A program made the translations under genes and the position numbers. DNA of 64,000 nt from Macrostomum lignano (taxonomy: Eukaryota): positions 124,001-188,000 of the forward strand of contig NIVC01000445.1 of assembly GCA_002269645.1 (NCBI GenBank). The letters run 5' to 3'. Below, piece by piece: positions 7,946 to 8,728 of this stretch (its first letter is position 1; each line of letters begins with the position of its first letter). The notes beneath the pieces are model-generated. The model ran no database searches. It was not told the DNA's origin and worked only from the letters and a program-made list of their open reading frames with translations.

Positions 7946-8728
7946 TCAATCCTTCTTTGCAGACTTTGGTTTCGGCGCATCATAGGGAGCAAGGCCGCGA
8001 AGGGGCCGCATACGGCGCCTGCCTACTCTCATCAGCTCCACCGGAAGTGGTGGCGGACTGGGGGGCATGTCGATGGAAAAAAAGTTTGGCGCCTGGATAA
8101 TCGGACGATGCCGATGGCGCCCATGGCGCTGCTGGCGCTGGTCGCGAACTTCGGCGGGCAGGTTGGCGTACCAGGCTTCACAGTCTGGGCAAGTTTGCGC
8201 AGGAAGGCGCTGCCTGTCATACCGCCGGCGTGAGTCGAACGTCGGCGGCGGCTCGTCCGGAAGCCTATTGTAGTCAGCAGCGTACTGCTTGCGTACTTGC
8301 GTACTTGCGTCAACTTGCGTACTGCTAGCGACTGGCGTCGGACGGCGGAGCTCTGAGGGCGACAGGACTAATTCCTGGATCTCCTCCTGCGCAACTGCAT
8401 CTTCGGACTCCACGGCTTGTGGAGACGAGTCCCAGGCCTGACTGTCCAACTGCTGGACATGGGCGACCGGTGAGCCTAGAGTAGTATGTGTGTCGTCCGA
8501 CTCGACATCCGAATCTACCTGGGCGGCGGGTGAGCCTAGAGTAGTATGTGTGTCGTCCGACTCGACCTCCGAATCTACGGAATCTCCTAGTAGCTCATCA
8601 ACCCCTTCGCCGATAAGTCCGTCCAAAATCAAGGACCAGTCTGGAGTCCGGATAATTGACCCGTGCGCCGGGACATGTAGCTGAAGTGTAAGGCGGTGGA
8701 ACCCTTTGTACTCATACGTGCTAAGCAA
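7946..8728 (-). CDS. Transposon-borne protein with CtIP/Sae2/Ctp1 C-terminal (SAE2-type) domain; true start uncertain
   Basis: [56 protein letters not shown] (8063-8230) is colinear with human CtIP [58 protein letters not shown], recalled from memory. Tail [11 protein letters not shown] also resembles CtIP RPKRRQPYNA. No in-frame ATG before the domain; the ORF track start is TTG. Internal 60-bp duplication at 8471-8580. Confidence 0.85.
   Translation of the reverse strand: [260 protein letters not shown]

Follow-up and report, generated by a model that had tools for sequence, protein, structure and literature searches.

A divergent CMC-type DNA transposon of Macrostomum lignano with a host-derived CtIP/Sae2 module that may engage MRE11-RAD50 at its own breaks

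Introduction

DNA transposons are known to carry captured host genes as cargo, among them RPA-like genes in Helitrons and ULP1 proteases in MULE and Zisupton elements. Mobile elements are also known to bring modulators of DNA-end processing, as phage Mu does with its Ku-like Gam protein and phage lambda with its own Gam, an inhibitor of RecBCD. Here we describe an 8,506-bp DNA transposon of the flatworm Macrostomum lignano whose cargo gene encodes a protein ending in a CtIP/Sae2-like domain. The element lies in a 64,000-nucleotide stretch of contig NIVC01000445.1 (assembly GCA_002269645.1, positions 124,001 to 188,000 of the forward strand), which we call the window and from whose first letter positions are counted throughout.

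Cargo capture is documented for the TET/JBP dioxygenases, which are carried by fungal KDZ, Plavaka, hAT, Harbinger and Helitron elements (PMC12730594). Like cargo of the TET/JBP type, the CtIP-like gene is a host-derived gene that lies inside the terminal inverted repeats (TIRs), is mobilised together with the element, is conserved in the families related to it and presumably benefits the element. It differs in that it is related to a cofactor of double-strand-break end processing, and would thus act on the very lesion that transposition itself creates. The likeness to Mu and lambda Gam is one of concept: in each case a mobile element brings a factor controlling host nucleases at double-strand ends, although the proteins are unrelated, the host machinery is different and the Gam carriers are not eukaryotic transposons.

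The family to which the domain belongs, CtIP/RBBP8-Sae2-Ctp1-COM1, has the same collinear 110-residue C-terminal module with an acidic, S/T-rich region ahead of it. Its Sae2-like region, which switches on the MRE11 endonuclease, has been modelled on the "S" surface of RAD50, with the phosphorylation site T847 of the human and S267 of the yeast protein in one pocket (bioRxiv 10.1101/2023.03.25.534200). As cited there, a peptide of the C-terminal 15-17 residues of Ctp1, corresponding to this segment and lacking any oligomerisation domain, suffices to stimulate the MRE11-RAD50-NBS1 complex (MRN). After hairpin-leaving Ac/Ds excision in yeast no revertants were recovered without Mre11 or Sae2, and MRX-Sae2 processes hairpin-capped ends (PMC3299998). 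Compared with the family at large, the transposable element (TE) protein is short (256 aa), encoded by a single exon, borne by a transposon and present in dozens of copies. It also has a DWSxLLD motif, a tandem-amplified acidic unit, and Ala or Asp rather than Ser or Thr at the position equivalent to T847/S267.

Among transposons, the closest described group is CMC (CACTA/EnSpm-Mirage-Chapaev; CMCT when Transib/RAG1 is included). The window element resembles it in its short target-site duplication (TSD), which has 2 bp as for Mirage, against 2-5 bp for CMCT. It further shares subterminal repeats and several same-strand accessory open reading frames (ORFs), as En/Spm has TnpA and TnpD. Unlike CMC elements it ends in CCCGCC...GGCGGG and not in CA...TG, its transposase lies below detection by Pfam Transposase_21, and we found no description in that group of an accessory set made up of a CtIP-like gene, ORF3 and a BEN-like gene.

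The initial annotation of this locus, made by a model from the letters of the window, knew of no transposon-encoded CtIP module. Full-text literature searches for a CtIP/Sae2 module in any transposon likewise gave nothing relevant. Of the roughly 15 billion proteins in the collection searched, the host gene alone scored below 1e-30, and TE-borne CtIP-like genes therefore appear to be unannotated. As far as can be told, a CtIP module as transposon cargo is new.

Results

A complete element defined by its copies and by empty sites

The borders of the element were fixed by its inverted repeats, by sister copies elsewhere in the genome and by the structure of the insertion site, with the following features.

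4502..13007, minus strand: complete autonomous cut-and-paste DNA transposon, 8,506 bp (blastn and MAFFT against three sister copies)
4502..4513, plus strand: left TIR CCCGCCTGGATA, 12 bp, with imperfect complementarity reaching about 4523
12996..13007, minus strand: right TIR (TATCCAGGCGGG), 12 bp, from the inverted-repeat pair and the sister-copy comparison
4500..4501: TSD AT, left copy (AT at both element ends)
13008..13009: TSD AT, right copy
13007..13328: 80-bp host tandem array, the insertion target, 4 copies, 97% identical

The three sister copies (C1411, C862 and C73) are 99.0-99.5% identical to 4502-13007 and end exactly at the element borders in both blastn and MAFFT comparisons. All four copies are flanked by a 2-bp TSD, which reads AT in the window and AA, TA and AA in the sisters; the element thus occupies four unrelated loci. 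The remaining repeats of the 80-bp array hold a single AT (GAGCTAG-AT-TGAGCC) and are thus natural empty sites, confirming the 2-bp duplication. Between termini of the form CCCGCC...GGCGGG, subterminal repeats of the GTCCGG/CCGGAC type are present. A candidate TIR CACAGATACTAGAATA at 4284/13417 was rejected, since the copy comparison sets the ends at 4502 and 13007.

On the minus strand the element holds four ORFs: transposase (11682-9352), CtIP-like gene (8715-7946), ORF3 (7463-6603) and ORF4 (6414-5467). The initial annotation had rightly placed the CtIP-like frame inside the TIRs and on the transposase strand. It also put the frame between the transposase and BEN genes; ORF3 in fact intervenes before ORF4, and the BEN assignment is weakly supported.

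The CtIP-like gene and its state in the window copy

The gene itself comprises the following features.

7946..8715, minus strand: CtIP/Sae2-like gene, single exon, ATG at 8715-8713 and stop at 7948-7946; broken in this copy by a 1-bp deletion
8648..8649: site of the 1-bp deletion, CC here against CCC in three sisters; codon 23 is frameshifted and a stop follows after 28 residues
7949..8278, minus strand: Sae2/CtIP C-terminal domain, 110 aa, with DYNRLP, RRRxDRxxL, CPDC, GRHRHR, APNFF, MPPSPP and RRRMRPL
8460..8578, minus strand: 60-bp tandem repeat, 2 copies, encoding an acidic unit that starts DS(E/D)

The frame at 7946-8728 had been taken for an intact ORF, a description that we had to correct. 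It is a 260-codon stop-to-stop frame on the minus strand with no in-frame ATG near its start. The three sister copies encode an intact 256-aa protein that begins MSTKGS, and their start is equivalent to the ATG at 8715 of the window, in another frame than that of 7946-8728. The missing C at 8648-8649 may be a homopolymer sequencing error, and the window copy could be served in trans by intact copies. An acidic region rich in S/T-Q and S/T-P had also been reported ahead of the domain, and it is indeed located N-terminal to the Sae2-like part.

About 60 nt upstream of the CtIP-like ATG, at 8773-8790 on the minus strand, we observed a polypyrimidine tract that ends in CAG (ttttcctcttttctgcag). 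If the four same-strand ORFs share one primary transcript, this tract could be a cis- or trans-splice acceptor.

Homology to the C-terminal domain of CtIP and Sae2

By pairwise, profile and motif comparison, the last 110 residues of the gene product are established as a true homologue of the C-terminal domain of CtIP/Sae2/Ctp1. In BLASTP, the window frame matched a mammalian CtIP with both CtIP_N and SAE2 at 36% identity over 64 residues (E=2e-11), and the match extended through the CxxC and RHR motifs to NFF/NFW. A profile of the 110 positions of the Sae2-like domain (A2), built from in-genome relatives and searched against 1.84 billion representative proteins, retrieved 398 proteins at E<=1e-3 (in 1.84e9), with the match mostly at or near the C-terminus. 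When the top ten matches were scanned, nine contained SAE2, seven of those also contained CtIP_N, and the tenth was the host's own protein. Beyond that protein of M. lignano, the best match was a 315-aa metagenomic CtIP-like protein (4.6e-22). It was followed by proteins of 500-1,400 aa that aligned with profile positions 1-100 at or near their C-termini, with E values of about 1e-11 to 1e-12. The CtIP/Sae2 domain that had been read at 7946-8728 was thus borne out.

The alignment with the CtIP module is collinear, pairing DYNRLP with SFDRVP, running through RRRxDRxxL, CxxC, (G/S)RHR and P-NFF/NFW, and setting MP-S/T-P against FP-S/D-T-Q. In consensus form the module reads F/Y-D/N-R-L/V-P, R(K/R)xxxR(K/R)xL, CxxC, (S/G)RHR, P-x-N/H-F-W/F, F/M-P-x-T/S-Q/P and a final RRRxP(L/Y). 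The similarity noticed earlier upstream of the core (RRRYDRQRL against RKKEERRKL) and at NFF/NFW falls into this alignment. A PYxA tail had been noticed as well, but it is not conserved in the family, whose conserved tail is KRRRRPL and aligns with RRR(R/K)P(Y/L) of CtIP. Residues C180, C183, H205 and R206 vary neither among 12 members of the family nor in the CtIP alignment.

The match to Pfam SAE2 (PF08573) that such a domain was expected to give was found for the family but not for the window ORF. Taken alone, this ORF scored 15.0 bits (E=0.055) against a gathering threshold of 19.8 bits, while 10 of 12 aligned in-genome relatives matched the model (best E 7.1e-6); the host's own CtIP scored just 13.4 bits. 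A six-frame scan of the 764-Mb genome gave 12 places over the SAE2 cut-off, the best at 28.8 bits, and all of them were relatives of the window ORF. Weak genome matches (C2341 and others) were set aside as low-complexity 'CPQ/FARR' repeats and a retroelement polyprotein. An alignment of the CtIP-like proteins (A1) found no match in a word-indexed search of 5.8e9 proteins, and a sequence search of the PDB with the CtIP-like profile found none.

At the position equivalent to the cyclin-dependent kinase (CDK) site T847 (human) or S267 (yeast), the window lineage and the host CtIP have Ala (QAPNFF), and four other TE lineages have Asp (DPNFF/W). CDK control at that site is therefore absent. An S/T-P or T-Q stands 9 residues past this position (MPPSPP, MPDTQP). 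In some lineages (L003, L008) the N-terminus holds a short CxxC-plus-heptad segment, recognised by eye only.

A further protein with this domain came from an unrelated sequencing run (Logan SRR20381883), on a 981-bp contig too short for context. There, a 200-aa protein (P0128) combines a C2H2 zinc finger with the Sae2-like domain, which to judge by its sequence is another non-canonical architecture of the domain.

Spread and selection across transposon lineages

The CtIP-like protein was found at 45 or more strong places in the genome (at least 45), with identities from 97% down to 34%; most of these places are open and some have stops. Transposase and ORF4 are likewise multi-copy and diverse. 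At 30 of the 45 CtIP-like places, a same-strand transposase lies 0.5-6.7 kb upstream and/or an ORF4 lies 1.1-2.3 kb downstream, and the transposases of these syntenic lineages are 38-62% identical to that of the window. Cargo status in the other lineages is judged from this same-strand synteny, and the lists of transposase, CtIP-like and ORF4 places are lower bounds.

Between lineages, the proportion of synonymous differences in the Sae2-like domain (pS) was about 0.8, which is saturated, against a proportion of nonsynonymous differences (pN) of 0.2-0.4. Domain identity between lineages was 44-66% despite the saturated synonymous sites, and 20 alignment columns were invariant across 12 sequences. 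The genome-wide comparison suggested when the gene was first noted thus found the ORF recurring in diverged lineages, with a ratio of nonsynonymous to synonymous rates (dN/dS) of 0.10 and 0.12 in the two unsaturated pairs. These comparisons of coding sequence establish the gene as one that is kept by purifying selection and is a standard part of many diverged transposon lineages.

Two features N-terminal to the domain are shared by the TE proteins. The motif DWSxLLD is common to the CtIP-like TE proteins and specific to them, and the acidic region is built of tandem repeats with the core [DE]GS[DE]T, in 1-5 copies, the number varying even among near-identical copies. Three near-identical copies of one lineage (L002, L003 and L004, on C312, C875 and C1126) differ only in the count of a 34-aa acidic repeat, which is 5, 2 and 3, respectively. 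This repeat contains DDEEGSETQGP, and from such counts in near-identical copies the number of S-E-T-Q units is therefore seen to be evolving fast.

Origin from the last exon of the host gene

The top profile match was PAA54340.1 (Mlig004387g2) of M. lignano. Mlig004387 has at least 3 exons, lies at three loci (C176, C2929 and C3324) with no TE genes nearby, and encodes an N-terminal coiled coil in the longer of its isoforms, which identifies it as the host CtIP and sets it apart from the cargo. The search for a host RBBP8 gene, proposed at the outset together with a tree, thus made clear that the window gene is not the sole CtIP locus of the host. CtIP_N used as a probe for the host gene returned coiled-coil noise only.

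Similarity between the TE proteins and host CtIP is confined to the region of the host's last exon, at 54-55% identity with E values of 1e-34 to 1e-36 in BLASTP. Capture of a whole cDNA was not supported, as the TE proteins have no significant BLASTP similarity to the N-terminus of host CtIP. The same host exon also holds one DDEGSET unit and an acidic, S/T-rich region ahead of the domain. Maximum-likelihood trees of the domain unite eleven TE sequences and the host in one clade, which has a long stem (support 100/99 and 96/99) and a metagenomic CtIP for its sister. Inside the clade these trees gave no firm branching order, with the host weakly nested and TE monophyly not rejected (approximately unbiased test, p=0.30).

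Since the host last exon groups with the TE genes (100/99), the gene was captured from the host lineage. Capture of the end of host CtIP had already been proposed in the initial annotation, and both of its parts were borne out, the kinship by the last-exon clade and the status as mobile cargo by TIRs, TSD, empty sites and copies. The simplest reading of the sequences is a single capture of the terminal CtIP exon from a macrostomid host, after which exon and transposon diversified together. Alternatively, there may have been more than one capture, or the TE gene may have replaced the host sequence.

A divergent CMC-type transposase and two further genes

The other genes of the element are these.

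9352..11682, minus strand: DDE transposase, 776 aa, with D206, D292, C311xxC314, H(4)H and then E 20 residues on
6603..7463, minus strand: ORF3, 286 aa, C-terminal CxxC and coiled coil, unknown family, conserved in the metagenome relative L055
5467..6414, minus strand: ORF4, 315 aa, weakly BEN-like, at 83 or more places in the genome (at least 83)

A direct Pfam match was absent for the transposases of four family members, that of the window included. In an alignment with three relatives (A3), the sequences that cover these positions conserve D206, D292, C311xxC314, HQVCCH and, exactly 20 residues further on, E. A C(2)C and H(3-4)H signature is common to EnSpm/CACTA, Mirage, Chapaev and Transib/RAG1 (PMC12730594). 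A hidden Markov model (HMM) of the transposase family matched ORFs of the same genome that are positive for Transposase_21 (PF02992) at E=5.8e-10 in an 11-sequence database, and the match spans the second-D/C(2)C and the H(4)H...E regions. From the conserved D/D/C(2)C/H(4)H/E motifs and the apparent link to Transposase_21, we therefore class the transposase as a divergent member of the CACTA/Mirage/Chapaev group and the element as a divergent CMC-type one.

Relatives outside the genome were few. A word-indexed search of 5.8e9 proteins with the transposase gave two relatives only, a metagenome scan added none, and a PDB sequence search with the transposase profile had no match. An AlphaFold2 model of the transposase was discarded for its mean pLDDT of 39.8. 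A public M. lignano entry in UniRef, a 1018-aa 'Guanylate cyclase domain-containing protein' (P0002), is a chimeric annotation: its last ~350 residues belong to a transposase of this superfamily, covering the N-terminal half and extending past the C(2)C motif.

Window ORF4 had no match to Pfam BEN (PF10523). In the C1267 lineage, the ORF4 region matched BEN over the full profile length at E=4.7e-4 and 20.7 bits, with the cut-off at 23.2, and residues 172-195 of window ORF4 align (E=8e-5) with the start of that match. ORF4 may thus be called BEN-like in a weak sense, as a candidate member of the family. The distant C1267 lineage (L037, C1267:86000-95999) has ORF3-like and BEN-like parts in one 534-aa ORF, the ORF3 part recognised by eye, and an extra 291-aa ORF between the transposase and the CtIP-like gene. 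Its CtIP-like protein starts with a CxxC-plus-heptad segment (MSDHWSHAATCEICKALVHDNWALRAEVERL).

Insertion locus and variation among copies

One more feature lies within the element.

7612..7688: 25-bp tandem repeat, 3.1 copies, between the CtIP-like gene and ORF3

Its copy number varies among the sister copies, C862 having one extra unit, and the repeat may be regulatory. The sister copy at C73:742905-751407 stands apart by 55 substitutions of its own; of its 50 transitions, 43 fall at CpG sites (CpG to TpG or CpA), and the CpG changes include a Cys-to-Tyr replacement in the CxxC motif. From the sequence, this pattern looks like methyl-CpG deamination, notable for a flatworm.

An MFS-type transporter gene has two plus-strand exons in the window, at 1697-2182 and 14751-15485, which match Pfam MFS_1 at positions 1-57 and 177-346. 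With the transposon inserted between these exons in antisense, the element occupies an intron of a host gene. Adjoining the MFS exon, the region 14039-16293 consists of long, coding-looking tandem repeats, their units being of MGISTVR type on the plus strand and of GGLLFRWGG type on the minus strand. A strong GC skew starts around 16 kb.

Discussion

The observations as a whole are best explained by a CMC-type transposon with a host-derived, selected CtIP module that would engage MRN at breaks of its own making, a reading to which we assign a probability of roughly 0.55. The part of it that concerns function, the steering of repair, is a strong hypothesis, built on sequence comparison. Within the TE proteins the RAD50-docking segment (P-N-F-F/W...M-P-x-S/T-P) is best conserved, with P, F, I, M and P invariant, and for this reason we propose that the TE protein engages host MRN at transposase-made breaks. 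The Sae2-like domain would contact host MRE11-RAD50(-NBS1) at the double-strand breaks made by the transposase, and the acidic [DE]GS[DE]T repeats and the DWSxLLD motif may tether the protein to NBS1 and to the transposition complex. Most probably acting as an activator, the protein would help donor ends that are blocked or hairpin-capped to be clipped or opened and then resected. The donor gap would then be refilled from the sister or the homologue by homologous recombination, so that the element is restored, with a net gain of copies, and lethal breaks are avoided.

A more specific version of this proposal takes the TE CtIP modules to be constitutive activators of MRN. With Ala or a phosphomimetic Asp they would be free of CDK control, and, tethered to the transposition complex by the TE-specific N-terminal motif, they would force homology-templated refilling of the donor. 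This version is tentative, and we hold it to be rather unlikely.

Several points weigh against the proposal that the module activates MRN at the element's own breaks. With its 1-bp frameshift, the window copy is unable to make the CtIP-like protein by normal initiation, and exact look-ups with two intact TE CtIP-like proteins, used as a proxy for transcripts, returned no record. Nor is the gene indispensable to the transposon group: the marine-metagenome relative L055, whose transposase is 47% identical, kept ORF3 and ORF4 and has no CtIP-like ORF, and 33 of the 57 listed transposase places had no CtIP-like match within 8 kb, the lists being lower bounds. The window lineage had no CtIP_N match and no CtIP-type tetramerisation domain in Pfam searches and in BLASTP against host CtIP. 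Ala or Asp at the T847-equivalent position suggests that regulation, and perhaps activity, differs from that of the studied CtIP/Sae2 proteins. Hairpins are known for Transib/RAG and hAT, but we know of no demonstration of them for CMC-type transposases. We also dropped the idea that the worm lacks the DNA-PKcs/Artemis route, which would have made MRN-CtIP obligatory. DNA-PKcs (Pfam DNAPKcs_CC3, E 1e-45) is present at C1047:14897-17188, C3128:34186-36425 and C137:375131-376803, and the occurrence of both DNA-PKcs and CtIP at three loci fits a partly triplicated genome. Since the host has DNA-PKcs, another hairpin-opening route may exist, and reliance on MRN-CtIP is not obvious.

The same conserved docking segment would also suit a protein that inhibits. 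A decoy would take the place of CtIP on RAD50, and perhaps on NBS1, yet fail to activate MRE11, so that transposase-bound ends or the excised intermediate would be shielded from MRN, ATM signalling would be damped, or repair of the donor gap would be shifted toward end joining. The human T847A mutant of CtIP is inactive, and both Ala at the equivalent position and the lack of a recognisable tetramerisation domain speak for such a decoy. Competition for the RAD50 surface is moreover a known mode of inhibition, used by the MIN motif of Rif2 and the iDDR of TRF2 (bioRxiv 10.1101/2023.03.25.534200). However, host CtIP has Ala at this position too, so Ala is not diagnostic of inactivity in M. lignano, and the Asp of several lineages may mimic the activating phosphate. 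A short Ctp1 peptide without the oligomerisation domain is reported to stimulate MRN, and CxxC and RHR are invariant although mere occupancy of RAD50 would not need them. In our judgement a decoy is improbable, if still the likeliest of the rivals.

Less probable still is that the protein acts independently of MRN, as a DNA-binding or bridging factor whose CtIP-type C-terminus binds or synapses the element ends or subterminal repeats in the manner of TnpA of En/Spm. CtIP binds and bridges DNA (PMC11317151), the RHR and the basic KRRRRPL tail are invariant, and the element has GTCCGG/CCGGAC-type repeats near its ends. The element already has a BEN-like protein of DNA-binding type and ORF3, however, and both are kept in L055 where the CtIP-like gene is absent. 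Conservation is moreover highest in the PNFF...MP docking segment and not confined to basic patches.

Among the rivals, only the remaining two are contradicted by the data. If the gene were a functionless passenger, a host exon acquired at random, in the manner of Pack-type elements, and in the course of decay, then the frameshift of the window copy, the stops in some copies and the related element without the gene would be readily understood. A decaying exon should not show dN/dS of 0.10-0.12, nor a domain that remains 44-66% identical at saturated synonymous sites with 20 invariant columns. The gene further starts at an ATG of its own, bears an N-terminal motif specific to the TE proteins, and keeps its position and strand in lineages whose transposases are as little as 38% identical, and we regard a mere passenger as very unlikely. 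That the window holds a host CtIP gene with a transposon inserted beside it, or an assembly artefact, can practically be discounted, because the gene is enclosed by the TIRs and has travelled with the element, which is found at four unrelated loci that differ in their TSDs, and the intron-bearing host CtIP occupies C176, C2929 and C3324, where TE genes are absent.

The copy gain of cut-and-paste transposons and the channelling of their break repair have so far been studied as the host's decision. Here, an element encodes a homologue of the factor that licenses resection and the processing of hairpin-capped or blocked ends by MRE11-RAD50. The cargo would form a new class among host-derived genes of eukaryotic transposons and offers a testable handle on transposon-driven choice of repair pathway. 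Because M. lignano is a regenerating model flatworm amenable to RNA interference, the prediction can be tested in vivo. For dissecting the activation of MRN, the TE proteins also provide minimal CtIP C-terminal modules as a naturally occurring series, in which the regulatory site is Ala or Asp and a tetramerisation domain is missing. If the modules are indeed constitutive activators, a cut-and-paste element would become net replicative, with ends of the RAG/Transib type opened or clipped, and dozens of copies may shift the balance of double-strand-break repair in the host.

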